Shown in pieces: positions 3 through 59,671 of a DNA stretch of 64,000 bases (positions are counted from its first letter, which is position 1; each line of letters starts with the position of its first letter). The stretch spans positions 233,105 through 297,104 of the IMG/VR virus record IMGVR_UViG_3300025141_000016. The stretch is one strand, 5' to 3'. Position numbers and translations under genes: made by a program. The notes under the pieces are model-generated. The model was not told the DNA's origin, did not search any database, and saw only the letters and a program-made list of their open reading frames with translations.

Positions 3-2144
3 ATTCCGGGGCGTTCTGACACATTACTGGAACTGATTGAGGGGGCGGGGTTCCAAGGACGCGCAGCACAGCGTTACGCCGACCGATTCCGTGAAACCCT
101 CGCTCAACAAAGCCGAGAGGTTGCCGCCAGCGCAAGTCGAGTCGCTGCCCGCTACCTCGTCGCAGACTGCAATCTGCGGCTTCCCTCTCATTCATGGATT
201 GACCCCAAGGGGAAGGTTCATTTGGTTCCCCTTATGCACGATGTCTGGGCCGAGGAAAAGATACGATCTACGCCCTCGATGCTGCGTTCGTTTGTGAAAC
301 GCTACAGGGAATACTATCCCGATGAACTCTATGAGATCGACCATCCGTGGACCAGTTTTCTGGTTGACCAAGGTTGGGTGAGGGTGGCGAACTTTCTGAA
401 CTTTGAGGGGAGAGATCACCTTGTTTCCCCGCACGCTTGGGAGTCAGCCGCAGACCTCATCATCAACTGTGTGGTCAAGAAGCAGCTTGACCCCGAGACT
501 ACTGTCGTGACGGTCGCTGGATATGGGAAGCAGCGATACTCGGTGTCCCAGATCGTCAGGGAATGGGGTGGGCGCAAGGCCGAGGATCGGTTGTTTGGGG
601 CACTCATGGCCCGCACCGCTGCCCGACTTTGGTATCACGGGACTGAAAAGCGTTTTGAAGAGTTCAAGACCTTTGAGAGCCACACGTTTGGGTCTGACCC
701 CTCCGAAGTGCCTCTGTTCTTCTCGCCCTCCAAGTCCTTTGCAAAGATGCACGCCCAAGGACCGAAGGGGGTCATCTACACGGCGCGGCTGAAGTGGCGC
801 AAGGTGTTTGATAGCGCCAACTTGTATCGGGAATCTCGGTACTGGCCCCCCGAACGTGACGCTCTGACCCAAGAGGGGAAGGCCCTGTACGACGACCTCG
901 TAGGGGGCAAGGTGTTTCCCGGCATTGATGAAGACGATCTGCTTGACGGGTATCCGAGTCTTTGGTCGCAGGTGCTCCGTATGGATTACGATGTGATTGA
1001 AACGACGGAGTTCAAGCGGTGGCTCAAAAAGAACGGTTACGACGCGGCTTATGTCACGGGAGATGGTGAGCAGAACGTGTTTGTCTTCTCCCCGAGACAG
1101 GTCGAGGTTGTGGGCGTGCAAAGGGCCTCCGCATCCGTTTCTGCTTCCCGTGTCGCTGCTCGCCATCCCGTCGTGGACATTGACCCCAGCAAAGTAAAGT
1201 TCAAGATCCGATCCAGTAGCGATGCTGTGGCTGTGGAAATGCGGTATGGCGGTAAGCGCATTGGCGGCATGAACGCCCACAAGGTCCGTTATCCAGAAGA
1301 GAAGGACTGCCCTCGGGACGTTACCGCGTTGGCTGAACGCTTCCCCGAGTTGGTGACGGGAGAATGGAAGCGCAGCGATGGTGAGGTGTGGCGATACATC
1401 ACCGCGCTGGCCGTCTTCAAAGCGTTCATCACCGAGGAGGAGTTTCGGGGGTATGGGCTCGGCAAGAAGATGTATAAGGCACTGATGGGGGCTTGGTTCA
1501 AGAAGGTCGGACCATTTCTTTTCATGCCCTATAAGTGTGACGGGGGTTCGGGCACGTCACCAGACGCGATGCGGGTTTGGCACTCTTTAGCCAAGGAGTT
1601 TCCATCAAGTGGCGACGTGGTTGCGGTGATGAAGAATCCGCGTGTGGCTCGGGGGCAGTTACCCCAGTACCGAAAGAGGGCACACACCCCCGACTCCAGC
1701 GAGGAGGTCGAGAACTGGGTGGATGACTTTGGGCGGGAAAACAACTACACGCCTGGAACCTGTGACCTCAACCGTGGCGACTGCGACATGATGTCAAACG
1801 TCTTCGCGGACTGGTTTGAGGACCAGACTGGCGTGGGGCTTCAGATATGGGCCGGTCAGGGGTTCATCCCTCCTCTCGGGAAGGATGCCAATGACCTCTG
1901 GGTCATGCTTTCGGGGGACAAAGCCCACAAGAAAGGCGAGAAACCCCTCTCCCATGTGGTCGTCGTCTGGGGGGATTGGGTCATTGACCTTACAGGTCGT
2001 CAGTTCGGTTCCAAGTACAAGGCCCCTGTGTACTCTCTTTCGGAGTTCAAGAAGCGGTGGGCCACCGTTGGGAAGGCCCGTCGGGCTGACCGAGGGATCA
2101 ACAACCTCCGACGGATGATGCTCCAGAACTCCAGCGATTGGTAG
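3..2144 (+). CDS. Tag-B polyprotein, 5'-truncated: unknown domain + ART-like + GNAT + transglutaminase/papain-like domain
   Basis: Frame of ORF 222..2144 is open back to the window start and includes ASASRVAARYL (129-158). ART-like: WYHGT..FFSPS..GYDA..VFSPRQV. GNAT: EFRGYGLGKKMY. C-H-D triad: GDCDMMS..SHVVV..IDLTGRQF. Confidence 0.75.
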   Translation: MPGRSDTLLELIEGAGFQGRAAQRYADRFRETLAQQSREVAASASRVAARYLVADCNLRLPSHSWIDPKGKVHLVPLMHDVWAEEKIRSTPSMLRSFVKRYREYYPDELYEIDHPWTSFLVDQGWVRVANFLNFEGRDHLVSPHAWESAADLIINCVVKKQLDPETTVVTVAGYGKQRYSVSQIVREWGGRKAEDRLFGALMARTAARLWYHGTEKRFEEFKTFESHTFGSDPSEVPLFFSPSKSFAKMHAQGPKGVIYTARLKWRKVFDSANLYRESRYWPPERDALTQEGKALYDDLVGGKVFPGIDEDDLLDGYPSLWSQVLRMDYDVIETTEFKRWLKKNGYDAAYVTGDGEQNVFVFSPRQVEVVGVQRASASVSASRVAARHPVVDIDPSKVKFKIRSSSDAVAVEMRYGGKRIGGMNAHKVRYPEEKDCPRDVTALAERFPELVTGEWKRSDGEVWRYITALAVFKAFITEEEFRGYGLGKKMYKALMGAWFKKVGPFLFMPYKCDGGSGTSPDAMRVWHSLAKEFPSSGDVVAVMKNPRVARGQLPQYRKRAHTPDSSEEVENWVDDFGRENNYTPGTCDLNRGDCDMMSNVFADWFEDQTGVGLQIWAGQGFIPPLGKDANDLWVMLSGDKAHKKGEKPLSHVVVVWGDWVIDLTGRQFGSKYKAPVYSLSEFKKRWATVGKARRADRGINNLRRMMLQNSSDW

Positions 2145-2366
2145 CTACCGTTTGAGGAAGGCGGCGGCGACACCCCATCCCTTCGACGTGAGCCGACGGG
2201 GCTCTTTCTTGGTGATCCAGCCCTTTGTCAGTGCATGGTGGTGGTAGGGGCAAGGCCCCGAAACCGGGATGGAACCCAGAGGGTTTTTCAAGCAGTGGTC
2301 GGCCCACTTGATCATCACCTTCCGAGTCATCTGGTTGATGAACGCCTCTTCGCCTTTCGATCTCAT
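2145..2366 (-). CDS. Small hypothetical protein
   Basis: ATG at 2366 preceded by AGGAG; stop abuts the stop of the convergent gene. Confidence 0.55.
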   Translation of the reverse strand: MRSKGEEAFINQMTRKVMIKWADHCLKNPLGSIPVSGPCPYHHHALTKGWITKKEPRRLTSKGWGVAAAFLKR

Positions 2367-2416
2367 AGGTATCTCCTGCCCCACTATACCGAGGGGGTGC
2401 GCTTCATCTGTACCCC

Positions 2417-2431
2417 CGGTACTCATGCTAT
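2417..2431 (+). promoter_or_regulatory. Class I (late-type) motif, variant
   Basis: CGGTAC-tcatg-CTAT, before ATG 2461. Confidence 0.6.
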
Positions 2432-2460
2432 GGGCACACGAGAATGAGAGAGCACCGCCT

Positions 2461-3474
2461 ATGTCCGAACTTCACCTGTATGACTTCGACGGAACACTGT
2501 TCCGAAGTCCCCATGAGCCTGCGGTGTGGGATGGTCAGTGGTGGAACGACGTGCGCTCCCTGATCCCCCCGTGTGTCCCACAGAAGCCGGGGGCTGATTG
2601 GTGGGTCAACCAAACTGTCAGCAGTGCCAAGCAGTCGATCTCCGACCCAGACGTGTTTGCCATGATGATCACAGGGAGGAATGCAAACTCGGGTCTTCGG
2701 TTCCGGGTGCCAGAACTCCTCAAACAGCGAGGGCTCAACTTCGATGAGGTCCATCTGACCCCCGTTAGCAGCACCCTGGGGTACAAGAAGAAGCTGCTGG
2801 GGAATACGTTGGGGCGGTATCCCCTCATCGACACCGTGCGGATGTGGGACGACAGACCCTCACACCTCCGAGCCTTCGCGCAGGTTGCGGAGAAGATGGG
2901 GATTGACCCCGAAAACATCCATGCCACCCAGGTCCGGGCCAAGTCCAAAGACCCCGAGTGCGAAGAAGACAGCCCAGCAGGGGGTGGTTTCCTGTCAGAC
3001 CCCCCTCCAATCGGAGACGTGTGCCGATATGTAGGGGTTTTTCTTGATGCTTCTTCCAAGGCAGCCCTGTCACATGCGTTCCCTTTTGCCCACAACAAGA
3101 TCAAGAACGACCATGTGACCCTCTGCCTTGGCCCCGCTCTTGGGGGAAACATAGCGGAGGGTGCCCTCGATCTCCTGGGAACGAAGGTACGCATGAAGGT
3201 GATTGGCTACGCCGAGGATGAGGATGGGCAAGCAGTAGTGGTTTCTGTTCCCCCCGGACTCATCTCGGACGCTTCCAGAATCCCTCATGTCACCTTGTCC
3301 ATCTCGGACTCGGTGCAGTCCAAGTACAGCAACACTCTCCTCCGCAAAGGGTGGGAGCGTGTTCGCGGCCCCGCCATCAGTGGGGTGATTGATATGTTTC
3401 CGCGCTCCATGCGAAGGCAAGCAAGTGCAGTTCGGGTAGCCTTCCTGCATTCTCGCTTGGGCCGTAGCGGGTAG
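2461..3474 (+). CDS. HAD-family (Swiss-army-knife type) phosphatase fused to 2H phosphoesterase; RNA end-healing enzyme; C-terminal tag B
   Basis: YDFDGTLF..ITGR..WDDR (HAD) and two HVTL motifs (2H). Start moved to ATG 2461, 30 nt after a class I motif. Confidence 0.8.
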   Translation: MSELHLYDFDGTLFRSPHEPAVWDGQWWNDVRSLIPPCVPQKPGADWWVNQTVSSAKQSISDPDVFAMMITGRNANSGLRFRVPELLKQRGLNFDEVHLTPVSSTLGYKKKLLGNTLGRYPLIDTVRMWDDRPSHLRAFAQVAEKMGIDPENIHATQVRAKSKDPECEEDSPAGGGFLSDPPPIGDVCRYVGVFLDASSKAALSHAFPFAHNKIKNDHVTLCLGPALGGNIAEGALDLLGTKVRMKVIGYAEDEDGQAVVVSVPPGLISDASRIPHVTLSISDSVQSKYSNTLLRKGWERVRGPAISGVIDMFPRSMRRQASAVRVAFLHSRLGRSG

Positions 3475-3483
3475 CCTCTCTAT
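3469..3483 (+). promoter_or_regulatory. Class I motif
   Basis: GGGTAG-cctct-CTAT, before 3513. Confidence 0.7.
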
Positions 3484-3512
3484 CAAGGCTCCCACCGTAG
3501 AGGTATTCGTTT

Positions 3513-4838: not shown

Positions 4839-4845
4839 GGCGGCG

Positions 4846-5667
4846 ATGACCCCTTCAAGCCAACGTGTAGCTTCCCGGTGGGCGAAGTCCCAAGCCAACT
4901 GGACGCTGCCCTATCTGGAAAAACTCATCAAGGCAGCCGAGGGTGACCCCACAGGGTGGGGGGAGAGTAGTCCTGCCGCCCGCGTCCTGCGGCAGATGAT
5001 CAAGTCCTCCGGGTTCGGGAACCTTGACCCGTTCCCAGTAGGTGAACTGTGGGACTACTTGACCTCATACGATGTGGACTCCGACGAGATCGCGGTGTTG
5101 AAGAAAGTTCGACCCCCCCGAGCACGGAAAAGGAAGGTAGGTCCGACATTCTACGAAGCACTACGCGCCTTTGAGCAGGCAACGGGGAAACACACGACCA
5201 CATCCCGCATTGACTGGGACAACGACCACCACTTGGCCCCGGCATTGTTGGCGATCACCAAAGCCGTCTCCAAGTTGCCCAAGCGGGCTGCCCGCCTCTG
5301 GCAGTCGGAAGTCAAGGAGGTGATGCTGGTCGGGCGCAACAAGAGCACCGAGGATGCCTCTTGGCGGGCCGGTGGCGTGATGCGTTTAGTGCTCGGAAAG
5401 AGTGGTTTCCACTCTGTGTCCCAAAGCGTTCCCCCCTGGCGCTCCCACATTGTCCATGAACTCGGGCACGCACTGGAGGACAAGTTGAATCTGGTGGTGA
5501 CCGCTTGGTCCTCGGACCCCTACGGCCATGAACCATACATTTCGGCATACGCGGACACGAACGCCTCGGAGGACTTTGCCGAGACGTTTCAGGCTTTGGA
5601 GATGGAGCCGAGCCGCCTACGACGAGTAGCCCCTGCCAAGTATGAGGACATGAAGGCTCGCTTTTGA
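4846..5667 (+). CDS. Tag-B protein with zincin metallopeptidase domain
   Basis: HELGH followed by SAYADTNASEDFAE; N-terminal SSQRVASRW; start moved to ATG 4846. Confidence 0.75.
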   Translation: MTPSSQRVASRWAKSQANWTLPYLEKLIKAAEGDPTGWGESSPAARVLRQMIKSSGFGNLDPFPVGELWDYLTSYDVDSDEIAVLKKVRPPRARKRKVGPTFYEALRAFEQATGKHTTTSRIDWDNDHHLAPALLAITKAVSKLPKRAARLWQSEVKEVMLVGRNKSTEDASWRAGGVMRLVLGKSGFHSVSQSVPPWRSHIVHELGHALEDKLNLVVTAWSSDPYGHEPYISAYADTNASEDFAETFQALEMEPSRLRRVAPAKYEDMKARF

Positions 5668-5673
5668 GGGGTG

Positions 5674-5719: not shown

Positions 5720-6097
5720 ATGTCTGACCAACCCAGTACCCGGCGAGTGGCCCGTGCGTTCCAAGCGGCACGAAACACCCGCCGCCTCAAAGAAGCCCTG
5801 GAGGCATACCTCCACTCCATCCAAATCGAATCCGAGCAGATGATGGATGACCCCAAGTGGGGGAAGGGGGGCAAGTATGACCCCGTAGCGGATGCCGGTG
5901 TTTGGATCGGGGACCGGGCCAAGGACGAAGCGGGGGCCGATGTGGTGCTCCACTTTGATGGGGCTGGGTATGACTATTTCTACTACGGGTCACGCATGGC
6001 TGAACCTCACCGCAAGGCGGTGAGGGCCATCGCCAAGAAGCTGGGCTACGAGATGGAAGACAACACCAACTGGAACATCGGCTTCTACCCGAGATAA
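5720..6097 (+). CDS. Tag-B hypothetical protein
   Basis: N-terminal STRRVARAF; RBS and class I motif upstream. Confidence 0.7.
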   Translation: MSDQPSTRRVARAFQAARNTRRLKEALEAYLHSIQIESEQMMDDPKWGKGGKYDPVADAGVWIGDRAKDEAGADVVLHFDGAGYDYFYYGSRMAEPHRKAVRAIAKKLGYEMEDNTNWNIGFYPR

Positions 6098-6527: not shown

Positions 6528-6536
6528 GCTGCACCT

Positions 6537-12074: not shown

Positions 12075-13097
12075 GTGAATCACCCGGACCCCAAACGAGT
12101 TGCTATCGCTGTGTCTCCGCAGCATCAGGCGGCTCGGGTAGCGGCTCGCTACGCCTCCTCCCCTCTGATAAAGGAGTTGGAGGAAGACTACCATTCCCTC
12201 TGGCATGACAAGCATGAAAGGGAGGACGGAAAGCCTCGGCTGTGCCCACTGAAAGCTGGGGTGCCCGATTGTGAGAAGATGACCCTCAAAGAGTTCGTTG
12301 CCAAGTGGAAGAGGCACGGGCTGAAGGCGGTAAAGGTCCAACGGCTTCCTACCACCTACTCCTACTATGACTGTGGGAGCCACGCCACGCTGCGGACGGA
12401 ACAGATCCATGGCAGCCGACTTTACCCCCAAGGCGACATCACGGTTGACTTGAACACCCCCATTCCTTGGAGCAAGGCGAAGAAAGGCGACTGGGTTCAA
12501 TGGCCATGGCACCACGGAGTGGTGATTGATCCCAAGCGCAAGATTGTGGAGAGTTGTTGGGGGGTAGACGGATGGGTGTTTCAACACCCCGTAGACCTTT
12601 CTACTTATGGGGCGAAGCCTACGGTTCATTCCGTGCATCCAAAAGAGAAGACCAAGACCGCCAGTTCTGATGGTCAGTGTATCGTCGGAGGCCAGTGCTT
12701 CCGCTACGCTGTCATGTGGGATGGCAAAGGCCCAGGATCATCCCCTGACGACATTGTTGTTCACGGGAACGTGCATGGCTTGGTCGGTCCTCACGCCTGG
12801 GTCGAGCGGAAGGACGGTCGCGTATTTGACTGGCAGACGGTTGAGGGGATCTGGGAGACGCTTGGCCGTCAACCTGACCCCAGCTACACCAAGCGCGGCT
12901 GGCCGAAGCGTGAGTTCTACGCGGAGTTCAAGCCGCGCAAGATGAAGCGGTACACCGCCGAAGACGCGCTGATCAACGGGATACGGAACCGGCACTACGG
13001 TCCCTGGGACGCGGATGAGGAGTACCGTCCTCCAATCCGATCAGCATCGCGGGTTGCCGCTCGCTACTTGATGGCTTCTCGGCGGCAACGCCGGTAG
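12075..13097 (+). CDS. Tag-B polyprotein: NlpC/P60-papain-like domain + transglutaminase-like domain
   Basis: YDC..HHGVV..ESCWG..HP..YG domain; KTAS linker; QCFRYA..HAWVE..FDWQ domain; tag B at both ends. Start GTG 12075 after AGGAG. Confidence 0.7.
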   Translation: MNHPDPKRVAIAVSPQHQAARVAARYASSPLIKELEEDYHSLWHDKHEREDGKPRLCPLKAGVPDCEKMTLKEFVAKWKRHGLKAVKVQRLPTTYSYYDCGSHATLRTEQIHGSRLYPQGDITVDLNTPIPWSKAKKGDWVQWPWHHGVVIDPKRKIVESCWGVDGWVFQHPVDLSTYGAKPTVHSVHPKEKTKTASSDGQCIVGGQCFRYAVMWDGKGPGSSPDDIVVHGNVHGLVGPHAWVERKDGRVFDWQTVEGIWETLGRQPDPSYTKRGWPKREFYAEFKPRKMKRYTAEDALINGIRNRHYGPWDADEEYRPPIRSASRVAARYLMASRRQRR

Positions 13098-13106
13098 CTT
13101 CTTTAT
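13092..13106 (+). promoter_or_regulatory. Class I motif, variant
   Basis: CGGTAG-cttct-TTAT, before 13140. Confidence 0.65.
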
Positions 13107-13139
13107 CTCTCCGATAAGGTCAAGTACCGGAGACAACCC

Positions 13140-13669: not shown

Positions 13670-14125
13670 ATGAGCGCATCCCCCCAGAAAGTAGCCGAGC
13701 GGTGGGCCTCCGAAGCCAAGTTCTTCCGTGGCCTCCACAGTCGCAACAAGGGCATCTTCTTTCGTGGGGCCAAGAACCCCGGTGCCGGTGGCGGGGCTGG
13801 CTTTGGTGCTCTGGGACGTGGCCTTTATCTCGCGTGGGACAAGGGGATCGCCCAGTTCTTTGCTGACCGAGCCGGGGGTCAGGTATACGCCTACAAGATT
13901 CCGTCCAGCCTCAAACTGCTCGATGCCCAGAGCAGCGAGATGGCGACGATCAAGGAAGGGATGGGATTCAAGCCCTGGCAGTATTCAGACGATCCCATGT
14001 ACGCCGCTGTCGTCACAGCCGAGGTAAAAGACCTTGGATACGACGGGGTGATCTCCGACAAAGCGGCAGATGGCCTTGTCTTGTTCGATCCCCGTAAAGC
14101 GAAGCTGGTGGACCTACCGGAGTGA
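13670..14125 (+). CDS. Tag-B protein with ADP-ribosyltransferase-like domain
   Basis: FFRG..LGRGLYLA..AQFFA..GYDGVI..VLFDP; N-terminal SPQKVAERW. Confidence 0.65.
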   Translation: MSASPQKVAERWASEAKFFRGLHSRNKGIFFRGAKNPGAGGGAGFGALGRGLYLAWDKGIAQFFADRAGGQVYAYKIPSSLKLLDAQSSEMATIKEGMGFKPWQYSDDPMYAAVVTAEVKDLGYDGVISDKAADGLVLFDPRKAKLVDLPE

Positions 14126-39309: not shown

Positions 39310-39630
39310 ATGAAAGACCATAAGCAACTATCCGTCCGTCGGGTTGTCATGGCAAAGCGAGTTGCGACAAAGTGGCTCGCGGAACGTGCTGTGCCCGAGT
39401 ATCGCCTGCGCGTCTACCATGGCTTCGGGCGTGAGTCCCGCAACCTTCCAGGGTTGCTCCGCTCTTTCCGCGACGGAAAGGTGAAGATTGTGACCGCCAC
39501 AAGCATCCCTGACCTTGGAATCAAGCCGGGGTTCGATCATATCGACGTATGGTCCAAGGATCGCGTAGCCCTCCAAGACCTTGATGTAGCCTTGCAAAAG
39601 CTGGGCTGCGAAACAACAGGGGTGTGGTGA
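39310..39630 (+). CDS. Tag-B hypothetical protein
   Basis: MAKRVATKWL; class I motif upstream. Confidence 0.65.
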   Translation: MKDHKQLSVRRVVMAKRVATKWLAERAVPEYRLRVYHGFGRESRNLPGLLRSFRDGKVKIVTATSIPDLGIKPGFDHIDVWSKDRVALQDLDVALQKLGCETTGVW

Positions 39631-45545: not shown

Positions 45546-45866
45546 ATGGACCTTCCCCTCACCACGAGGGTCGCGTTGCGGCATCAGGTCGTTCGCGATC
45601 TCCCCGTGAGTAAGGGGAAGAAGCCTCATTATGTGAGGTTGAACGTCAACATAGACCTCCCTGGCAGAGATCCTTACTTGCAGAAGATTCAGGGACTCGC
45701 TGCTCGCCAGACGAGCACCATCCCCATCATCAAGCGGGTTTCTCCCGTCACGGTCACTCTGGACCTCCCCATCGCGTTGGAGGAACGACGTGGAGTGGTT
45801 GATGCGATCCAGAAGCTACCCTTCGTGAAGGGGGTGCTCATTACGACTGGTCCACCGATTCGGTGA
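45546..45866 (+). CDS. Small tag-B-like hypothetical protein
   Basis: MDLPLTTRVALRH start immediately after the lysin stop. Confidence 0.55.
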   Translation: MDLPLTTRVALRHQVVRDLPVSKGKKPHYVRLNVNIDLPGRDPYLQKIQGLAARQTSTIPIIKRVSPVTVTLDLPIALEERRGVVDAIQKLPFVKGVLITTGPPIR

Positions 45867-46679: not shown

Positions 46680-47000
46680 ATGACTGAACCTACTCGCCGG
46701 ATGCTGATCCGATTTGCGTCCACCCTTCCTGTGGGATCAGACGAACGTCGGACCATCCTCGCTGGACTGGACAAGCAGGGTTCCGTGGAGTCCTTTGAGA
46801 AGGAACTCGCCATACAGTTACGTTTGCATACGGGCTTGGGTCCAAAGGATCAGATGGGCCTGAAGGGTCGCACCGTGTGGCTTGCCGATGGAAAGGGTGA
46901 GGTACTGATCTACGATACGACTGCCCGTGGGACGGTGCTCAACTACAAGGGCAAGGAATACAAGTCGGTAAGGGACTTGATGAAGTCCCTTTCTCGGTAG
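46680..47000 (+). CDS. Small tag-A protein
   Basis: LIRFASTLPVGSDERRTILAGL, then KQGS. Confidence 0.75.
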   Translation: MTEPTRRMLIRFASTLPVGSDERRTILAGLDKQGSVESFEKELAIQLRLHTGLGPKDQMGLKGRTVWLADGKGEVLIYDTTARGTVLNYKGKEYKSVRDLMKSLSR

Positions 47001-50100: not shown

Positions 50101-52606
50101 GGGCTTCGCAGCGGACACCCTGGAGATCGACGTAAGTGCGGACACCAGTGGTCGGCTTGTCCTGACCATGAAACAGGCACCAGTTGATACCACAGGTGCC
50201 ACGCTGGAAGTCGTGAACAACGCGACTCCCGCCGATGACTTCATGGTTCTGGCGGGTTTCGATGCTGATGCAGTAGGAAACGACCAGACGATTCTGGTGA
50301 GTGGTCCTATCGCTACGGAGATCACCAACCTCACGGCAACCACGACGGGCGTGACCCCATACGACCGGATCTGGATCAGGAACCGTATCTGTCCGGGCAA
50401 CGCCCAGACGGCGACTCACCTGACCGATTCCGAGTTCTGTTTGAGTCAGTGTCAGTTGAAGATGCTGGGCGGAACCGGTGCTGGATTCGCGGGCCTGACG
50501 GCCAACGAGCAGGGCTACGCTGGGATCACCGGCACCATGCAGGCACCCACCCTCTTTGGTGAGGTTGGTCTGGCTGGTGGGCAGGACGCATCTGATGATG
50601 TGGTGGTCGAGTTGTTCGCGGACGGTGGAACGACCGATCAGAACAACATCTTCAAGATGACCTTTGAGGGTGAGCCCATCACCATCGAGTTCACTGACGG
50701 CGCTGGAGCGGCGATTGCTGCTGGCGGTTCGGCTGATGTTCCTCTGGGACCGCTCACTGACGCGAACAGTATCCTCGGCCAGATCGACGCTGCCATGACG
50801 ACTGCGGGAGTCACTGGCACCGTTGCCCAGGAAGGGTGCGGTATCCGTTTCCGTGGTGGGAGCACGGCTGCTGCCGCTTCCATCGTGATCGGAGATGCGA
50901 ACGCCAACGACGTTCTCGGATTCACCGAGGGCGATGTGGCCTACCGGACTGTTGTTGAGACTGAAGTGGTCGTATCCGCCATGATGGCGGCTTTCGACAA
51001 CTGGACGAACGTCGGTGGTATCGCCAAGACGGTCAACGACGAGGCCAACGCCAAGTACCTGTTCATCGAGAGCATGGGTACGGCAGGGCTCGGGACGCTT
51101 TCCTCTGTGGCCTTTGACGACGCGGCTACGGATTCCGCACTCCGTCCGGGTGTTGGGCTCGGTGTGGCTGTGGGAGACGGTAACGCGGGAGAGGCGGCCA
51201 TCGACGGCTTCTTCGTCACTTCGACGGATACCGTCAATGGTTCGGGAACGGCGAACACCTCCATTCTCAACGCTGGCACGGGCCAGGATGGAAATGTGGG
51301 TGAAACCTACCGTGATCTCGTCACTGGGTTCACAGTCTCCGTCCTTCCACGGGCTGGTGGCGGCTCCTACCCCACTGGTGGAACCATCACCTTCACGGTC
51401 AGGGAGAATGTGACCACCGACAGCAACCTGCCGGTGAACACGATTCCTGGCCTGGAACTGACGGTCAGCAACACGTCCGGGGTTGTCGCCGGAGATACGG
51501 CGGTTGTCTCTACCTACGAAAAGGGTGGAAATCAGCCGAGCGTTGGGGATGTGTACTACGTCTCCTACGACTACGCGAAGCAGGATTTCAGTGCTGCGCT
51601 GTTCACCAAGTTGTCCTCCATTCAGGCGGCCTACGGGGCGAACAGTCCGAATAACCCTGTCTCGTTGGCATCGTACTTTGCGGTCCTCAACGGTGCTGTT
51701 CTCCTCTCGGTCAAGCAGGTCCAGAAGGACACTGACTCGACGGGAGATGGGGCTTACGACACAGCCAGTGAAACCGCCTTCATCGCGGCCATTGACGACG
51801 TGGAAGGAACGCTTCCGGGCGGTCTGTACCCCGACATGTTGGTGCCCTTGAAGGGAGATAGCCTGACTCTGTTCCAGTATGTCGCCATGCACTGTGACAT
51901 TCAGTCGAGCATCCGCTACCGCGCAGAGCGTACCGCTATCTGCGGATACGGTGCCGGTACGCAGCCTCGGGACGCGGGAACCATCGCGCAGGCGGTGGGT
52001 CGTTCTCGGTTGCGCCTCATGTACCCGGACATCGCCACGTTGAGCCTTTCTCGGGCTGACGGGACGACCGACTCCTACCTTGTGGATGGCACCTACCTCG
52101 CCGCTGCATGGTCTGGAAATCGGGCTTCCCCGAACATCGACGTTGCTACTCCGTGGACGCGGGGACGCATCTTCGGGTTCGATGAACTCGCTCGGACGCT
52201 CGATGCGGTTCAGCAGAATCAGGTCGCTGTGCGCGGTGTGACGATCTTTGGCCAGCGCCAGAGCATCATCGAGTGCCGTCATGGTCTGACCACTGACATG
52301 ACCAACGTGTTGACGAAGACCCCGACCGTGGTGACCATCGCGGATGAGGTTCAGCGTCAGGCGCGGGCGACTCTCGACAAGTTCATTGGAACGAAGTTCC
52401 TGCCGAGTGTCACGGGTCAGATCGAGGGGCAGTTGGCCAACACCTTGAAGAAGCTGGTCCAGGCATCCATCATCAACGCCTTCACGGGAGTTTCTGCGGC
52501 AGTGTCAGCAGATGACCCCACGGTGGCGGAAGTGGAAGCCTACTACCAGCCCATCTTCCCGCTGCTCTACATCGTCGTGACCTTCAATCTGCGAAGCACA
52601 CTGTAG
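47117..52606 (+). CDS. Contractile tail sheath protein with large insertions
   Basis: N-terminal YAPPGVY; C-terminal sheath domain ending YQPIFPLLYIVVTF; 1829 aa. Confidence 0.88.
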   Translation: MAFPGSVYAPPGVYTQTLYEDPIQGLAASVRLPLIIGTGSEELFQTALELIRGSSSSVDQRVVQEDETGRAVVSVSDTGVVTLGNFDGDLTRLQVKNYPIVSGQGTGTTATDAASVNVTLNGAPIVVLAIDGATGILTLSVTPESTDEVKVTYYFNRTDTLITDTLSDQISPDAPEIFGALGENYVVTADVNDTLEFTVDSEDTVSVTITASPVTGWTAAQVATFINAEATGTTLIASTTVDNFGNTVLHLTADRDIVVEDGTCNTTLGLTSAYDTARNKVFYTFQSPIVDGSDGGVTTTDPADVTVKVGGTQVIPTAVDGQTGAITLPFAPETGTTVTCQYYFNSWQDTFDYLAHRGITDITLCGLTPDRSDYIDGADFILKDDKILWGTSTLTAAGTNTAGSTYFDDTQISTSLVDTRQYLAACAAVVDTSVTPPVENRKDFTLPLQPTTGNGRDTPLGASTYAEVANGRLDLPTDRPDLVYAYWGYTVEDALNRGRVEVTKVDSATSQITLRESVPVGASVYATFYYNTLVDGDYTLTSVTAGASGVGTYSIMDENSVSLLTPQFGAKSALLATVTVEFPSGSERTPDCRFEPPFTTTSFTGAVEEDVTIEFAVQDATLAKYAVASAGPYYPVTGASDNLLITLDGTDRTIDLNNPARTGATPAFANPKGFRASVVGDEIVYDAAGFATGTITVGGTPVATTATLLIDGVTLTEQGATGWVNDATVDLTATAIATAINTFVTTVSAVAIGSVVHITAATAGTAGNAIATSSPSGDPAFTFSAATLAGGTVLGTALAITAATNAIDMELDGGLGSAKLVQAQVNAGAGQKAEHIVAAINRAAHGEFGAALGGGAATIILAADASDVDDYYVDWEIKVTAGLAAGEKNTITAYNGTTKVATVTAWAGGAPVITDTYYVYDPDTCPSMTGATRFLNAVTIGTGGFDDIILSYVGAISGVTAITTAAVPIAAATYNTVADLVTAAQTAMDAAITAAGFAADTLEIDVSADTSGRLVLTMKQAPVDTTGATLEVVNNATPADDFMVLAGFDADAVGNDQTILVSGPIATEITNLTATTTGVTPYDRIWIRNRICPGNAQTATHLTDSEFCLSQCQLKMLGGTGAGFAGLTANEQGYAGITGTMQAPTLFGEVGLAGGQDASDDVVVELFADGGTTDQNNIFKMTFEGEPITIEFTDGAGAAIAAGGSADVPLGPLTDANSILGQIDAAMTTAGVTGTVAQEGCGIRFRGGSTAAAASIVIGDANANDVLGFTEGDVAYRTVVETEVVVSAMMAAFDNWTNVGGIAKTVNDEANAKYLFIESMGTAGLGTLSSVAFDDAATDSALRPGVGLGVAVGDGNAGEAAIDGFFVTSTDTVNGSGTANTSILNAGTGQDGNVGETYRDLVTGFTVSVLPRAGGGSYPTGGTITFTVRENVTTDSNLPVNTIPGLELTVSNTSGVVAGDTAVVSTYEKGGNQPSVGDVYYVSYDYAKQDFSAALFTKLSSIQAAYGANSPNNPVSLASYFAVLNGAVLLSVKQVQKDTDSTGDGAYDTASETAFIAAIDDVEGTLPGGLYPDMLVPLKGDSLTLFQYVAMHCDIQSSIRYRAERTAICGYGAGTQPRDAGTIAQAVGRSRLRLMYPDIATLSLSRADGTTDSYLVDGTYLAAAWSGNRASPNIDVATPWTRGRIFGFDELARTLDAVQQNQVAVRGVTIFGQRQSIIECRHGLTTDMTNVLTKTPTVVTIADEVQRQARATLDKFIGTKFLPSVTGQIEGQLANTLKKLVQASIINAFTGVSAAVSADDPTVAEVEAYYQPIFPLLYIVVTFNLRSTL

Positions 52607-52719: not shown

Positions 52720-54150
52720 ATGCCTACCTTCACCTCTGATGATCGCAAGATTCTGGTCCGGTACGCCTCGACGCTGCCCTCCGGGTCGCCGGAGCGGAAG
52801 GCTGTTTTGGCGGGTCTTTCCCTGACTGGTTCCGGTTCCGGTGCTGCAAACGCGAAGTATCTGGACAGCCTGCCCTCTGGCACGAAGGCCAAGATTCTGA
52901 AGAACGTGGCCAAGCATTATGGTGTCTCCGTCTCCGAGATCGAGGACGAACTGACAGATCGGGATGCAGAAGCCCTGTATGAGTACATCGCAAACGACAA
53001 TGCCTTGCGGATGCAGGTTTACCGCGACTTCAAGCAGCAGCGGTTGGCTGCAAGCAAGAACGCTGCCGGATACGCCCGTAAGTCCATGCGTGGGGGAGAC
53101 TACGGAGGGGCTGGGAGCAGCAAGCAGTTGGTGAAGGACATGATTGCCAACATGCGACGGGTGAAGACCAACGCTGAACGAAGCCATGCCGTTGAGCAGG
53201 TGCAGCACGCGGAAGCTGCGAAGTCCATCACCTCCCAACAGGCCAAAGAGGTCATGGGAGCCATTGGTAAGACCGCATCGGCCCGTACCGCCGAGGACTG
53301 GATGGAAGACGCGGTGAAGCGCCCTGGTCGCCTTCACAAGTTCTTCGGTATCCCCGAGGACGAGACGATCCCCATGTCGAAGATCGACGGTGAGATCGCC
53401 AAGTTGAAGAAGAAAGACGACCGCACGAAGGACGAGGAGTCCCTGCTCGATGCCCTCAACCTGGGCAAGACCTTCAAGGAAATGAAGAAGTCGGCTGCGG
53501 GAGAGGAACACTACATCGGGGACGAGGAAGCGGGGGTGTACTGGAGCGTCGATGAAACCCCTCGCGGATGGTTCGTCCAGGCTTGGGTGGATGGTGGTCA
53601 CTTCACACATGACTTCCCGAAGGATGGTCCTTACCCCACCGAAGGGGAAGCCATGGAAGCTGGATGGTCACAAGGGCTTGAATGGGTGGTGACCAACGAT
53701 GTGAGCCTTGCGGGCGAACCCAAGACCTTCCCCGCCTGGGCTCGCAGGAACAGATGGCAGCCTCGCACAGCCTCCTCCGATGATCGCATCGCTCTCATCC
53801 GCTACGCCTCTACCCTTCCTGTGGGGTCAGATGAGCGCAAAGCCATCCTGTCGGGGTTGAAGACTGCTGCCCTTGATTCCGTGTCTCTCGGTGAGATGAT
53901 GGTGTCGGCGGCAGCCCAGGCTCGGCTGTTCTATCGCCTTGACATGAAGCGGTTTGTGGGTGTGTACGAGGAAGTGGGTCAGAATCTTATCCGAATCGGG
54001 CATACCTCTGACCCCGATGACCGTGCGTTCCTTGTCAGCGAGGTCGATAAGGGGCTGGCCGATTTGAAGAAGCACAACATCACCGCTATGTCGGAGGCGT
54101 TGGAGCACATGACCCGTGCCTACGCACTCGTTTCCAAAGCGTATCGCTGA
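52720..54150 (+). CDS. Tag-A polyprotein with about five small modules
   Basis: Two tag-A copies; RLAA, KTAS-ARTA, KSAA, RTAS, KTAA linkers. Confidence 0.75.
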   Translation: MPTFTSDDRKILVRYASTLPSGSPERKAVLAGLSLTGSGSGAANAKYLDSLPSGTKAKILKNVAKHYGVSVSEIEDELTDRDAEALYEYIANDNALRMQVYRDFKQQRLAASKNAAGYARKSMRGGDYGGAGSSKQLVKDMIANMRRVKTNAERSHAVEQVQHAEAAKSITSQQAKEVMGAIGKTASARTAEDWMEDAVKRPGRLHKFFGIPEDETIPMSKIDGEIAKLKKKDDRTKDEESLLDALNLGKTFKEMKKSAAGEEHYIGDEEAGVYWSVDETPRGWFVQAWVDGGHFTHDFPKDGPYPTEGEAMEAGWSQGLEWVVTNDVSLAGEPKTFPAWARRNRWQPRTASSDDRIALIRYASTLPVGSDERKAILSGLKTAALDSVSLGEMMVSAAAQARLFYRLDMKRFVGVYEEVGQNLIRIGHTSDPDDRAFLVSEVDKGLADLKKHNITAMSEALEHMTRAYALVSKAYR

Positions 54151-55403
54151 TGGCTCGACGTACTGCCAAGGCTGATGTGACCCCGGTTCGACAGCGGACC
54201 CAGTACACCTGCATGAGCACCTCCCTGATGATGTGCCTCCAGGCCCTTGGGTACGACGTTGACGAGGATGAGGTCAACAAGGTCATGGGCGCACGTCCCA
54301 TGAAGGGTGCAGCGTGGGAGCAGGCTCTTGCCGCTGCCCAGCACTTCGGAGTCCGAGGAACACTCGTGACCCCTTCGACTGTGCGGCAGTTGAAGGAATG
54401 GACCGACGCGGGCAAGCCCGTGATGATCGCCTGGAATCCCGAGGGTCGAGAGTGGTCACACGCCAGCGTCGTCTTCGACGTGACCCCGTGCAAGGAACAT
54501 GGGTTCGACGTTCATGTCGCTGACCCCAACATCCCTGACCCCGACGAGACAGTCCGGGTCATGCCCAAGTCCGAGTTCTACAAGAAGTGGTACGAGAAGT
54601 GGCCGAACTACTTGGTTCGCCGTCCCGCTCTCATGCTGGACCGGGAGATCACTCCTGATGGTCGTCAGGTGATGGCCTTCAAGAAAGCATCCTCTCGTGG
54701 CTGGGAGAAAACCATCGCTTCTTGGAGCAAGGAGTACAAGACCCCAGAGGGGAAGGTTTTAGGGACCGTGGTTATCGACCGGGGCAAGGTCAACTGGAGG
54801 CCGAACCAGTTGATTGAGGGTTTCGTTCGTCCGCAGGTCATCAGTCGTTCCCGAAGTGGGGAAGAAATCCCCAGTAACGAGAAACTGACCTCTGTGGCAG
54901 ATGCCTGGGTGCGGAAGAACCATGGGAGACAAGTCATGGCTTCCGGTTCCGCTGACCCCAGCCGGGTGGCGGCCAGATATGCCTCGCGCTGTGCCAGTGG
55001 GGATAAAGCCCTCTGGGCGGGTCGGCGCAAGCCCACTTCCGGGGAAGTGGAATGGGCGAAGAATGCCAAGTGGCAGGATTGGGAGCCGCACCCACTCCCC
55101 GATGACCTCACCAAGTTTTTCAAGCGCACCCCAGATACGATTGAGGTGGGTCTTTCCGAGATCACCCCAATCCGGGCTCGGGAGAAAGGCATCGCTAACG
55201 CCAACCGATTCATGTGGTTGGCGTACTGGGGGAAGATGCCCCGGCGAAAGCCCATTTCGTTGAGAGAAAACGATGACGGCACCTACACCATCCTTGATGG
55301 GAACTCGACCTATGCCAACGCCAAGATGAGTGGGTGGAGACACATGTGGGGTCGAGTTGAAGAGTCCCCCTCTACAACGCGGCTATCGCGGAGGATCCCA
55401 TGA
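54150..55403 (+). CDS. Tag-B polyprotein: C39-like peptidase + unknown + ParB/Srx-like domain
   Basis: RQRTQYTC..SHASVV..VADP; KPI..YTILDGNSTY..GW; ADPSRVAARY. Confidence 0.72.
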   Translation: MARRTAKADVTPVRQRTQYTCMSTSLMMCLQALGYDVDEDEVNKVMGARPMKGAAWEQALAAAQHFGVRGTLVTPSTVRQLKEWTDAGKPVMIAWNPEGREWSHASVVFDVTPCKEHGFDVHVADPNIPDPDETVRVMPKSEFYKKWYEKWPNYLVRRPALMLDREITPDGRQVMAFKKASSRGWEKTIASWSKEYKTPEGKVLGTVVIDRGKVNWRPNQLIEGFVRPQVISRSRSGEEIPSNEKLTSVADAWVRKNHGRQVMASGSADPSRVAARYASRCASGDKALWAGRRKPTSGEVEWAKNAKWQDWEPHPLPDDLTKFFKRTPDTIEVGLSEITPIRAREKGIANANRFMWLAYWGKMPRRKPISLRENDDGTYTILDGNSTYANAKMSGWRHMWGRVEESPSTTRLSRRIP

Positions 55404-56911
55404 ACTTTACTGCCTCTACCTTACGTCTTGCGTCCCTGCGGGTTGCCTTTCACCACCTCAATGCTGAATGGCACCGCATCGCGAAGCCCAAATACTTGAA
55501 GACGCTTGATTGGATGCTGGGGTTGATCCGGTCCTTCGACAAGGACGGCTACCAGATTTCTGCCGACCTCTCCAATAGGAACATGCTGCGCCGGGTCATT
55601 CGTATGAGGCAAGCGGTTCAGGATGGGTTCGATCTTGCCCTGCTCATCGAAAATGACGAGATCATGGAGGGGGCTGGAGCCAAGGCTATGGGGCGGCTCC
55701 AGAAAGCTGTGAAGGAGCAGGCTCAACTCCAGCCCACCGATACCGATCTTGCTGCGTTTGTGAAGACCTACGCAGACAAGGAGGACGGTGCGCGGCGTAC
55801 CCAAGGGGAGTTTTTCAAGAAGCTGATTGCCAAAGAACTGGAACTTGGGAAAGAGGAAGTCGCCAACATGGATACGCTCGTGATGAGCGACAGGCCATTC
55901 TTTGATGCGTGCTTCAATGTCGTCAACCAGTACGTCAATGCACGGAAGAACAGGGTGGCTTCAGCCCTGTCGTCGGCTCCCGGTGAGTTCAAGATGCGGG
56001 ACAAGGCAAACACCTCAACGTGGAACAAGAGTCGGAGGGGGAAGAAACCACGCGCTTTCTACTATCTGGGTGACCTCTTGGGGTGTATGTCCGTCACCAC
56101 TTCTATCCCTGACATGGCTCATGCGTGTGAGGTGGCACAGTCTTCCATCAAGATCATCGCCAAGGACAATAAGTACCTCGATACGCAGGGTGGCTACAAC
56201 GCCGTCCACTACGCGCTCCTCGTTGACAAACTCGTCGTGGAGTATCAGGTGAAGGCGAAGGTGAGTGCCATGGAGGCTGCTATCTCCCATGATCTTGTCC
56301 ATGACGACGACAAGTTCCGGGCGAAGTTCAAGCCTACAACGAGCGCCCCCGAGGGTCGTATCCCTCTGTCTTCCGCCGAGAAAGACATGGTAAAGCGTGT
56401 GATAGACATTTCCACGCAACTCACCATGCGGGACTTTGAGCAGGCGTTTGACCTCGGGCTGATGACAGGGGGGCAGCCTATTGACCCCACCGATCTCCTT
56501 TATGGTGAAGGCTTGTCTCCCGAAGAACTCAAAGAGCGCATCCACATGGCCAGCCTCCGCATGGCTCGGTACTACCGTTTCTGGGAACCCCGGTTCGGTG
56601 GGGCCAAGGTGGGCGGCCATGACCCCTACGAGTTCTACGAGGGGATCTCTCCGCAACACCCGCCCCCAGGTGGCTGGGCGAAGTGGGAGGCCGAGGAGAA
56701 ACGGGAGGCCGAGCGGAAGGAGAAGAAGCTGCACAAGGACGTGGCCCAGTGGATGCGTCGGAACGCGAGGGGCAAGAACATCTACGAACTCATCGACGCA
56801 GCGGTCATGCACTTCGGCCTCCGTCGGCCCGATGGCTATGCCTACGATGGCGGCGAAGGCCCGAGGTGGGTCCACGTCCTGGCCGACAAATACCACAGAC
56901 CCTACGACTGA
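55400..56911 (+). CDS. RelA/SpoT-like nucleotidyltransferase (small alarmone synthetase-like) with tag-B-like leader
   Basis: RDKANTSTWNK (RxKxxxSxxxK), DLLG, GYNAVH, EYQVK, AAISH. Confidence 0.7.
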   Translation: MNFTASTLRLASLRVAFHHLNAEWHRIAKPKYLKTLDWMLGLIRSFDKDGYQISADLSNRNMLRRVIRMRQAVQDGFDLALLIENDEIMEGAGAKAMGRLQKAVKEQAQLQPTDTDLAAFVKTYADKEDGARRTQGEFFKKLIAKELELGKEEVANMDTLVMSDRPFFDACFNVVNQYVNARKNRVASALSSAPGEFKMRDKANTSTWNKSRRGKKPRAFYYLGDLLGCMSVTTSIPDMAHACEVAQSSIKIIAKDNKYLDTQGGYNAVHYALLVDKLVVEYQVKAKVSAMEAAISHDLVHDDDKFRAKFKPTTSAPEGRIPLSSAEKDMVKRVIDISTQLTMRDFEQAFDLGLMTGGQPIDPTDLLYGEGLSPEELKERIHMASLRMARYYRFWEPRFGGAKVGGHDPYEFYEGISPQHPPPGGWAKWEAEEKREAERKEKKLHKDVAQWMRRNARGKNIYELIDAAVMHFGLRRPDGYAYDGGEGPRWVHVLADKYHRPYD

Positions 56912-56936
56912 CTTGAAGACCCCCGTAGGGTTAGGT

Positions 56937-56951
56937 CGGTAGGGAGGCTAT
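56937..56951 (+). promoter_or_regulatory. Class I motif
   Basis: CGGTAG-ggagg-CTAT, before 56977. Confidence 0.75.
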
Positions 56952-56976
56952 GATCTCACAGGGATAGAGGTGTTGT

Positions 56977-57558: not shown

Positions 57559-57566
57559 GGGGGACC

Positions 57567-58256: not shown

Positions 58257-58264
58257 GGTGAACG

Positions 58265-59671
58265 GTGCCAACCAATGTAGTCAAGACACCAGCCGATGAG
58301 AAGAAGTGGGAGAAGGCCAAGGCCCGTGCGAAAGAGCAGGGGAAGGCCGAGAACTATGCCTACATCATGGGCATCTACAAGCAGATGAACCCCGAGAGGT
58401 TCAAGTCAGCCCAGCGGGTCACCGCCCGGTTTCGCGATGAGGACTATGTAGACCTGCTCCAGAGGAAAATCTCCCTAAAGGAGTTCCTCAAAAAGCACCC
58501 CAAGATCAAAGCAGTTGACACCCAACGACTCGATGCCCTGCCGGAAAGCGGATTGTCCAGAGGGTACGACTACGATTGCTTTGTCCATGCAGAACTGCGA
58601 GCCGTCCAGTTGAGCGAAGCCAAATCCTACCGAGAGGTAGACTGGGAACCCATCGGACTCGACGGTGCCGGGGCCAACCCACCCAGAGGAGCCGGGATCC
58701 CGTGGAGTGAGGCCAAGAAAGGGGACTGGGTTCGGTGGCCCGGACTCGGAGGCCATCACGGCGTGGTCATTGACCCCAACCGGAAGATTGTAGAGAGTTG
58801 TTGGGGCTACAAAGGCACCGTGTTCCAGCACCCGGTTGACTACCATCCCTACGGAGGCGGTGGTGAGGTTTTCCCCGTGCGCCCCAAAGTATCAGCCCAG
58901 CGGGTCGCCGCCAGATACGCAGCACAGCTTCCTTTGATGGACCCCCTCTACAACCTGCGGGAAGCCGCCAAGGAACTGCTCTTGCTGGAGGACCATCTGG
59001 GTCATGCCCAGAAGCACTGTCCTGACTGCATCCGTAAACATCTGCTCACCACGGAGGCACTGCTTGAAGAAGCAGTGCGCCTCGACACAGAAGGGGAGAT
59101 GTTGGGGTTGCTCTCACCGCTTCCGGCACAGGTACGGGAACTGTGGACAGCCTATCAAGATGGTCGCCCGGAGCATGAGATCGGGCAAGCCGCCCGTGTT
59201 TTGCGTAAGGGACTCGTAGAGGCTTCCGCCGATGTTCGTGTGGCTGCCCAGGCTGCAAAGCAGGGGAAGTATGCCTACATCATGGGGATCTACAAGGGCA
59301 TGAACCCCAAGGCTTCTGCTTCTAAGGTTGCTGTACGGTACTTGACGGCTCGGATGTCTTCAAAGATACGAAGAGCCATAGCGAAGTGGTACAAGAAAGA
59401 GAAATACACTTCGGAGCTTTATCCTGGATCCTACAAGCACAAGTGGAACAAGGAAAACCACCCGGATGTCTTGGAGAAGCGATTCAACAAGATGTATCGG
59501 GGTTTCGGAGGGGACCAGAGAGAACACTTCGCAACCAAGGTGTTGGACTACTACGAACACCCAAGCTGGGCTCGGGGGTACGAAATCTTGGCGCAAGCGT
59601 GGGAAGATACGGATCGCTACTTCAACGAACCGGTGGAAGATCCAGACCCTTACGACGAGGAGGACTACTAA
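58265..59671 (+). CDS. Tag-B polyprotein including an NlpC/P60-papain-like domain
   Basis: Three tag-B copies, duplicated YAYIMGIYKxMNP, domain paralogous to 12075..13097. Confidence 0.75.
   Translation: MPTNVVKTPADEKKWEKAKARAKEQGKAENYAYIMGIYKQMNPERFKSAQRVTARFRDEDYVDLLQRKISLKEFLKKHPKIKAVDTQRLDALPESGLSRGYDYDCFVHAELRAVQLSEAKSYREVDWEPIGLDGAGANPPRGAGIPWSEAKKGDWVRWPGLGGHHGVVIDPNRKIVESCWGYKGTVFQHPVDYHPYGGGGEVFPVRPKVSAQRVAARYAAQLPLMDPLYNLREAAKELLLLEDHLGHAQKHCPDCIRKHLLTTEALLEEAVRLDTEGEMLGLLSPLPAQVRELWTAYQDGRPEHEIGQAARVLRKGLVEASADVRVAAQAAKQGKYAYIMGIYKGMNPKASASKVAVRYLTARMSSKIRRAIAKWYKKEKYTSELYPGSYKHKWNKENHPDVLEKRFNKMYRGFGGDQREHFATKVLDYYEHPSWARGYEILAQAWEDTDRYFNEPVEDPDPYDEEDY

Follow-up and report, generated by a model that had tools for sequence, protein, structure and literature searches.

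A short peptide motif, modelled as a helix, at termini and module joints of proteins in a clade of huge phages

In a 64,000-nucleotide stretch of DNA (the window, positions 233,105 to 297,104 of IMG/VR virus record IMGVR_UViG_3300025141_000016), a short peptide of the form SAxRVAARY, here called tag B, recurs in 10 or 11 of the 72 predicted proteins. This motif is under selection at the peptide level, is common to a whole clade of huge phages and is placed at the N-termini, C-termini and domain junctions of proteins that, judging from their sequences, look like effectors and polyvalent proteins. The reading that we favour, at somewhat less than an even chance, is that tag B serves, independently of its position, as a prohead-docking label whose carriers leave the head together with the DNA. 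The window has a G+C content of 59%, and of the deposited phages only LR745208.1, which is uncultured and 485 kilobases (kb) long, is related to it at the DNA level, with orthologous proteins about 40 to 50% identical. IMG/VR contains the window phage as contigs of 297 kb and 150 kb; a few of the window proteins are also similar to those of Tunturi_5, an Acidobacteria jumbo phage.

Tag B is a peptide motif under selection

The first-pass annotation of the window had listed 16 copies of tag B in 11 proteins. All 16 positions are in frame on the + strand and read as had been described; 14 of them are good copies, one is borderline and one is unsupported, in a total of 10 or 11 proteins. In an unbiased k-mer count, RVAARY is the top 6-mer of the window proteins, with 5 copies; in residue shuffles (n=200) the most frequent 6-mer averaged 2.0 copies and never exceeded 3. 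The strict pattern R[VI]AxR[YWFH] has 8 in-frame matches, 2 out-of-frame matches on the + strand (at 9075 and 46874, in coordinates of the window, as throughout) and 0 matches on the - strand of the window.

To avoid circularity, a 14-residue matrix was trained on 70 non-redundant copies from other genomes only. Compared with a shuffled proteome, it places tag B far above expectation, with 13 window sites (first R/K codon at 138, 1149, 4864, 5744, 12135, 13050, 13688, 45567, 54963, 55439, 58415, 58901 and 59324) at scores where the shuffled proteome yields at most 0.18. Some copies had been called weak in the first-pass annotation; of these, the sites at 5744, 45567 and 55439 are supported by the matrix. 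As for the remaining sites, the one at 3433 is borderline (9.0 bits, 0.58 expected), with a weak copy at the same C-terminal place in the LR745208.1 orthologue, and the copy at 12084 (KRVAIAV) finds no support in the relatives-trained matrix. Site 39358 is too near the start codon for matrix scoring and is kept in the LR745208.1 orthologue.

Synonymous codons differ among the copies at every position, and the sole pair of tags with at least 11 identical bases (58415 and 58901, which share 15) belongs to a single gene. The codons vary between copies and the peptide is kept; what is selected is therefore the peptide rather than the DNA. A DNA repeat or regulatory DNA element is ruled out by these varying codons, by the single pair with such a shared run and by the position of all copies in frame on the coding strand. 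The residue shuffles, the controls (out of frame and on the opposite strand) and the matrix from other genomes rule out a composition artefact, and the unrelated flanks of most copies rule out whole-protein paralogy.

Occurrence across the clade

Tag B is common to the whole clade of huge phages to which the window belongs. The matrix of window copies, used at a threshold of at least 14 bits on the 598 open reading frames (ORFs) scanned in LR745208.1, finds 13 sites, compared with 0.55 in shuffles. In 80 head-module loci, which are the best loci found with the prohead protease of the clade as bait and do not include the contig of the window phage itself, there are 87 copies in 398,000 residues, about 15-fold more than the 5.8 expected. 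A 436-kb phage in IMG/VR has the tag as well. Tunturi_5, the nearest relative in culture, has no copy in the 80 kb of its head and tail genes that were examined and so cannot serve as a model. The 101 non-redundant copies give the consensus S-A-x-R-V-A-[AS]-R-[YFWH]-[LA]-x-A-[KR], and clade-wide it can be written S-A-x-[RK]-[VI]-A-[AS]-[RK]-[YFWH]-[LA]-x-A-[KR]; between positions -12 and +17 of the 101 copies there is neither a conserved Glu nor any fixed residue outside the helical pattern described below.

Termini, module joints and predicted structure

The placement of tag B at N-termini, C-termini and domain junctions, already noticed in the first-pass annotation, is borne out by counts at both kinds of position. 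Among 96 copies, 15 are within 25 amino acids (aa) of the N-terminus, 18 within 25 aa of the C-terminus and 63 are internal, and as 6.5 would be expected per end the terminal enrichment is 2.3 to 2.8-fold; in single-domain carriers, 4 to 21 residues separate the tag from the N-terminus, or about 10 from the C-terminus. Domain boundaries, at which an enrichment check had been proposed, are enriched as well, since 22 of the 28 internal tags are within 10 aa of a homology breakpoint, compared with 9.9 expected and a random maximum of 18 in 2000 permutations; the 6 exceptions are in proteins without a partner in the set. This count comes from a rerun on the non-redundant set, the version with all 72 homologues being noisy (48 compared with 29.3 expected) on account of one large family.

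Natural variants of the carriers differ by exact deletion or swap from tag to tag. P0003 corresponds to the 58265 protein with residues 57-209 removed, P0013 has a 45-aa leader joined at a tag to the body of the 11886 protein, and in P0009 and P0040 the joint falls at an RVAAR. Whatever the function of the tag, these exact swaps show how the phages of this clade assemble new multi-enzyme effectors. The 45-aa leader (MPTNVVKTPADEKKW..KAK…NYAYIMGIYKxMNP) is predicted as a confident helical hairpin and is always closed by tag B; it is found in the window at 58265-58405 and 59220-59314 and also in P0003, P0005, P0006, P0012, P0013, P0040, P0044, P0048 and P0065, where it heads proteins with differing C-terminal domains.

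In AlphaFold models of the 58265 protein (mean predicted local distance difference test, pLDDT, 72.9) and of an SH3/Zn-ribbon protein of the head module (75.6), every tag is a short helix located in a stretch with a pLDDT of about 45 to 60, flanked by domains at 85 to 96. The conservation of the motif follows a helical i, i+1, i+4, i+5 pattern (R0, V1, A2, R4, the aromatic residue at 5 and L6). Tag B can be read as a short N-capped amphipathic helix, and an isolated helix of this kind, modelled within a low-pLDDT linker, is typical of a peptide that folds upon binding to a partner.

The individual copies of the window, all on the + strand, illustrate each of these positions. Internal copies are SASRVAARYL at 129..158 (aa 583-592 of the full 1251-aa ORF of a polyvalent ADP-ribosyltransferase, ART, protein; 25.5 bits), SASRVAARHP at 1140..1169 (immediately past the ART-PolyVal domain; 10.8 bits) and DPSRVAARYA at 54954..54983 (16.4 bits), which has a C39-like peptidase domain on one side and a C-terminal domain on the other. 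The three copies of the 58265 protein, all supported by the matrix, are SAQRVTARFR at 58406..58435, which closes the 45-aa leader module (AlphaFold helix 43-54), SAQRVAARYA at 58892..58921, which joins a papain-like and a four-helix module (helix 211-220, pLDDT below 50), and SASKVAVRYL at 59315..59344, which follows the second copy of the leader-like module (helix 351-363).

N-terminal copies are SSQRVASRWA at 4855..4884 (aa 4-13 of an HExxH protein; 22.9 bits), SPQKVAERWA at 13679..13708 (161-aa ORF; 13.6 bits), MAKRVATKWL at 39349..39378, at the extreme N-terminus of a 93-aa ORF and kept in the orthologue LR_419344, and two variants. One of these, STRRVARAFQ at 5735..5764 (125-aa ORF; 13.7 bits), has an R-V-A-x-A-F form that matches the variant in the SH3/Zn-ribbon protein of the head module; the other, ASLRVAFHHL at 55430..55459 (14.4 bits), comes just after a TLRLAS that resembles a second motif of the window, tag A, described below. 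Two further copies are N-terminal depending on the start codon: QAARVAARYA at 12126..12155 (23.0 bits) is near the N-terminus if the protein starts at GTG 12075, as in the database protein P0038, and LTTRVALRHQ at 45558..45587 (12.3 bits) is N-terminal if the start is ATG 45546, right after the stop of the endolysin gene. C-terminal copies are SASRVAARYL at 13041..13070, 9 aa ahead of a TAG stop (29.5 bits), and the borderline SAVRVAFLHS at 3424..3453, 14 aa before the C-terminus of a HAD/PNK-CPD protein.

Proteins with and without the tag

The carriers of the window, encoded on the + strand, include the 1251-aa polyvalent protein, which has three tags in its full length and of which the C-terminal 713 aa, with the ART-PolyVal domain, are in the window (3..2144); a 273-aa protein with an HELGH (HExxH) motif and no Pfam match (4846..5667); a 340-aa protein (12075..13097) that has a tag at either end and contains a module of papain/NlpC-like type, 'GDWV..HHGVVID..ESCWG'; a protein in which Peptidase_C39_2 (aa 9-126) is followed by the tag and then by a C-terminal domain (54150..55403); and a 468-aa mosaic protein of four modules separated by three tags (58265..59671). 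Two of the carriers (11886 and 58265) have the papain/NlpC-like module in common, and further ones are several small proteins without an assigned family. The borderline copy belongs to an RNA-repair-type protein (2269-3474), which has a HAD_SAK_1/polynucleotide-kinase-like domain and also matches cyclic phosphodiesterase weakly; its gene adjoins the polyvalent ART gene, and its LR745208.1 orthologue is beside the head protease cluster.

LR745208.1 carriers include another ART-PolyVal protein and a 2H phosphoesterase. In the relatives, tagged ORFs of 1200 to 2800 aa, with 3 to 5 tags each, are located just upstream of the prohead protease gene and hold topoisomerase IB, InPase, RNA ligase, carboxypeptidase, GNAT and PRTase domains, several of these recognised domains being preceded by a tag at about 30 aa; the giant ORF of locus L074 brings together InPase, RNA ligase, topoisomerase IB and carboxypeptidase, and that of L071 topoisomerase IB, GNAT and PRTase. 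The carriers thus share two traits with polyvalent proteins, namely effector-type domains combined in one chain (including ART-PolyVal in the 1251-aa window protein and InPase in L074) and, in many relatives, the position of the giant tagged ORFs directly upstream of the head-morphogenesis genes. Those genes are the prohead protease, a scaffold-like protein and the major capsid protein (MCP, identified in the clade as phrog_2522), and a tagged SH3-like/Zn-ribbon protein is encoded upstream of them too. In LR745208.1, about 3 kb separate a weakly tagged HAD/PNK-like gene (404201) from the gene of the head protease. Of the 19 matches to a loose pattern there, 7 are in the 340-421 kb interval, about one sixth of the genome, where the head genes sit.

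The SH3/Zn-ribbon protein, conserved in the head module and of about 200 aa (L074:9428-9997 and orthologues; LR745208.1 402952-403533), begins with an SH3-like beta domain and closes with a four-Cys Zn ribbon; in between come VPGGAGTV-VPGGP, a variable linker and a tag-B-like helix (RVAxAFVKKALYW), in that order. It has no Pfam or PHROG family match, and certain phages have it as the last part of a fusion with a Lys/Glu-rich protein of 700 to 1100 aa. A homing-endonuclease-like gene (GIY-YIG type by PHROG; L043:10117-10974 on the - strand, equivalent to LR745208.1 402114-402974) sits between the protease and SH3/Zn-ribbon genes.

Among the window proteins checked, tag B is absent from the RecD2, RecA, SbcCD-like, clamp loader, primase, sigma factor, endolysin and sheath proteins, and in the head-module loci of the relatives it is absent from the MCP, the scaffold-like protein and the prohead protease. 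Pfam and PHROG searches of the carriers were mostly empty, with no family spanning the tag or the 45-aa leader; a Foldseek search of the 58265 model in the PDB gave nothing at an E value of 0.001 or better, and an ESM Atlas search with the leader and tag returned only small viral proteins without a name, with scores below 0.9.

Tag A and the tail of the prohead protease

Tag A is a motif of about 25 aa ([LIV][LIV]R[LFYVM]AS[TS]LPxGSxER[RK]xILAGL) with 10 copies in six window proteins that lack an enzyme-domain Pfam match. It is N-terminal in all six (13140-13589, 15581-17017, 33819-35057, 41909-42244, 46680-47000 and 52720-54150), and a second, internal copy is found in the proteins that start at 15581 (aa 391), 33819 (aa 152) and 52720 (aa 358). 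In LR745208.1 a diverged form, …LRSKLIRLAHENPALRPHLLPLL…, is present in at least 10 proteins, one of them encoded between the MCP and protease genes. As the first-pass annotation had noted, tags A and B never occur in the same window protein, tag A being confined to six other proteins, although this mutual exclusion is statistically uninformative, since zero overlap would be expected in 35% of cases with 6 and 11 of 72 proteins. All six multi-tag proteins are homotypic, a mildly significant result (naive p of about 0.01) for which internal duplication could account. The N-terminus encoded at 55400 (STLRLAS-LRVAFHHL) looks like an A-core followed by a B-core.

Several of the tag A genes have neighbours or segments worth recording. 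At 13095-13142, the tag-B protein stops at TAG 13095-13097 and an N-terminally tag-A gene starts 14 codons on, in the same frame; read-through of this TAG, which would fuse the two proteins, is unlikely, as the downstream gene has its own GGAG and ATG. Just downstream of the tag-A ORF at 41909-42244, overlapping it in another frame, a protein with a ferritin/Dps-like domain is encoded (42202-43386), the C-terminal domain of which matches LR745208.1 387673-388407, preceded there by tag B. The 52720-54150 protein, with its two copies of tag A, contains a Fusellovirus VP2-like (DNA-binding) segment.

The prohead protease of the clade, of about 470 aa (L048:10001-11425 and the genes of L049-L126), has a C-terminal extension of about 200 aa that is absent from Tunturi_5 gp331 and ends in a conserved tail, EARxLIRL[AG]KLLS. 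The R-hydrophobic-A core that had been pointed out in both tags is real and is also found in this tail, a likeness that rests on about six residues. That tags A and B are variants for one receptor is, given this core, a fair hypothesis.

Function: docking, processing or another role

According to the favoured reading, the tag would bind a component of the assembling prohead, and the enzymes that bear it would thereby end up inside the capsid and pass into the host along with the DNA, as happens with the targeting sequences of T4 and P1; polyvalent proteins would carry one tag for each module or module group. Because all tags would be equivalent and in flexible linkers, recombination between two of them would yield an in-frame functional chimera, which would account for the rampant shuffling of modules at the tags. 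Prohead binding, packaging and ejection are steps that we infer. The docking label is preferred because the carrier set resembles ejected effectors, because tagged genes cluster in the head module, because housekeeping and shell proteins are without the tag, because the tag resembles a helix that folds on partner binding and because the C-terminal tail of the protease has the R-hydrophobic-[AG]-x-x-hydrophobic core in common with the tags; moreover, single-domain proteins keep the tag at an extreme terminus, a placement more in keeping with a label than with a cut site between domains. Should tag B indeed serve for head loading, sequence alone would reveal which among the numerous unknown proteins of uncultured huge phages enter the host at infection, these being the first-strike anti-defence and takeover enzymes, and the tag would provide a portable handle of 10 to 12 residues for loading foreign proteins into large capsids.

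Several points weigh against this reading. Tag B has so far been seen in metagenomic phages only, its receptor is putative and the packaging of its carriers is a proposal. Known capsid-targeting sequences are strictly N-terminal and belong to one phage each, and a tag acting at any position is without direct precedent; of the 96 copies, just the 15 near an N-terminus are placed as in T4. The prohead protease of T4 cuts at L/I-x-x-E and that of SPN3US at AXE, and no conserved cut site of these types adjoins the tag in the 101 non-redundant copies. Polyvalent proteins have up to five tags though one label should do, which fits processing equally well. Some carriers are distant from the structural genes, such as that at 39349, which adjoins the sigma factor gene, and most carriers are without a recognised domain, the effector-like character of the set resting on a minority.

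A bolder version, which we regard as rather doubtful, is that tag A, tag B and the protease tail are variants of a common docking code, namely a helix with R-hydrophobic-[A/G]-x-x-hydrophobic, for which the procapsid in a large clade of huge phages would have one internal site. Cargo loading would then be general and position-independent, encapsulin-like but viral, and the tags would also be interchangeable in-frame recombination joints, their exchange yielding new combinations of injected effectors. If true, the tag would be a sequence-only predictor of the injected proteome in uncultured huge phages.

The main alternative, though we lean against it, is that tag B is a processing or junction motif, whose helix would be recognised by a phage peptidase (the prohead protease, or a tagged papain/C39-like or HExxH module) that cuts beside it and frees the effector modules, the tag marking cassette boundaries. 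The coincidence of tags with module joints, the exact deletions or swaps in P0003, P0013, P0009 and P0040, the 3 to 5 tags of the giant ORFs and the frequency of peptidase modules among the carriers are all consistent with this, as is the location of the tags in low-pLDDT linkers between confident domains, as expected of a junction; furthermore, passages of the polyvalent-protein literature predict autoproteolytic domain release (PMC5512222). However, the conservation is helical, with no flanking residue fixed enough for a P1 site, and instead of a sharply conserved P1/P1' in an extended conformation, the tags are helices in both models; nor is there a conserved Glu, unlike in the T4 or phiKZ/SPN3US motifs. 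Cleavage at the well-conserved tags near the protein ends (4 to 21 residues into the chain, or about 10 before the C-terminus) would free only a tiny peptide, the usual substrates of the prohead protease (the MCP, the scaffold-like protein and the protease itself) are without tag B, and some domain junctions in the giant ORFs lack it. Processing and an address label would nevertheless be compatible and both may hold, by analogy with the T4 targeting sequence, which is bound and cut.

Docking to a partner outside the prohead seems unlikely. The partner might be a hub protein of the host or a nucleic acid that gathers the effectors where they act, a compartment or filament built by the phage, or the tag-A module in the second class of proteins. 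The tag does behave as a short linear motif in flexible linkers, a helix with two Arg and an aromatic residue could bind to nucleic acid or in an acidic groove, tags A and B segregate onto different proteins, and an actin-like Volactin is encoded in the window. Nevertheless, the predicted substrates of the carriers are diverse (protein, RNA, DNA, nucleotides and possibly peptidoglycan), which makes a common site of action unlikely, the tags are most concentrated in genes within the head-morphogenesis module and the A-B contact is purely hypothetical. Finally, a functionless linker helix spread by module duplication or recombination, as a scar or microhomology site, is very improbable. Exact tag-to-tag joints do exist, one gene holds two tags with 15 identical bases, and there is paralogy among some carriers, the papain-like module being found in both 11886 and 58265 and the leader twice inside 58265. 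However, no other window tags share a run of 11 or more bases, codons being free and the peptide kept; the consensus stays the same between genomes whose orthologues are 40 to 50% identical, as well as in about 100 non-redundant contexts whose flanks are unrelated; and in a neutral linker the spacing of R, V, A, R and the aromatic residue would not be maintained.

Other genes of the window

The window contains a replication/recombination block coding for a RecD2-like helicase, RecA, SbcCD-like proteins, a PD-(D/E)XK nuclease, a clamp loader and a primase, together with a sigma factor and a NusG-like protein. It also encodes an endolysin, a tail-terminator-like protein and a tail sheath, and numerous ORFs without family assignment. 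The sheath gene (47117-52606) is unusually long (1829 aa), with sheath homology at both ends and, relative to Tunturi_5 gp326 (1204 aa), a large insertion in the centre. The actin-like protein (60868-61872, - strand) is encoded among tail genes, has a full-length match to Pfam Volactin (E value of 1.7e-76) and is 60% identical to LR745208.1 337411-338454.

Comparison with known systems

Capsid-targeting sequences, polyvalent proteins and toxin junction motifs are already known; literature searches found no common targeting or junction motif for jumbo phages or polyvalent proteins, and no description of one clade-wide helical tag acting at any protein position, as tag B would. The closest parallel is the capsid-targeting sequence (CTS) of T4, which directs IPI-III and Alt into the prohead core for ejection with the DNA (PMC7411985, PMC9024508), Alt, an ART, being the classic packaged enzyme (PMC7411985). 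As with tag B, a short peptide is common to several unrelated proteins of one phage, with an ADP-ribosyltransferase among the carriers. The CTS is, however, strictly N-terminal, 10 to 20 aa long and removed by gp21, whereas tag B is also C-terminal and inter-domain, is clade-wide, has no Glu-type cut motif and would mark candidates for packaging. In P1, the large anti-restriction enzyme DarB has an N-terminal signal that targets it into the head and that suffices to bring in a reporter protein, but no consensus has been reported for the N-termini of the Dar proteins (PMC9024508). In contrast, the clear consensus of tag B is shared by more than 10 proteins in each genome.

Short terminal peptides that dock cargo within an HK97-fold shell offer a second likeness, and the tail of the clade protease has the core of tags A and B. 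The C-terminal tail of HK97 gp4 has been shown to target the protease into the prohead, and the cargo-loading peptides of encapsulins are Gly/Ser/Leu-rich and extended, whereas the tags are Arg/Ala helices whose binding to a shell is hypothetical. A C-terminal tail has also been proposed to target the SPN3US protease gp245 into the prohead (PMC7411985).

Recurring short motifs are known in other contexts. VENN in CdiA and DPxGL in Rhs are junction motifs of polymorphic toxins, present once per protein before the C-terminal toxin. Like them, tag B is a conserved short peptide located exactly where variable effector cassettes are exchanged, as in the leader, tag B and variable C-terminal domain of P0003, P0005, P0006, P0012, P0013, P0040, P0044 and P0048; unlike them, it can recur within one protein and also stands at the very ends of single-domain proteins, and there is no sequence similarity. 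Jumbo phages also have prohead-protease cleavage motifs that recur in many proteins, that of phiKZ being similar to the AXE motif of SPN3US. AXE is found in many head and ejection proteins (PMC7411985), but it has 3 residues ending in Glu and is also in the MCP, whereas tag B is a helix of about 12 residues absent from the MCP, the scaffold-like protein and the protease.

Polyvalent proteins are proposed to be packaged and injected, a delivery likewise reached by inference in the passages of Iyer et al. 2017 considered here (PMC5512222), in which no common inter-domain peptide is mentioned; the word 'linker' appears 0 times in that paper. The carriers of tag B resemble them in their defining domains (ART-PolyVal, InPase, peptidases, GNAT and nucleases), in their mosaic architecture and in their head-gene neighbourhood, with the difference that single-domain proteins bear the same tag B as the polyvalent ones.

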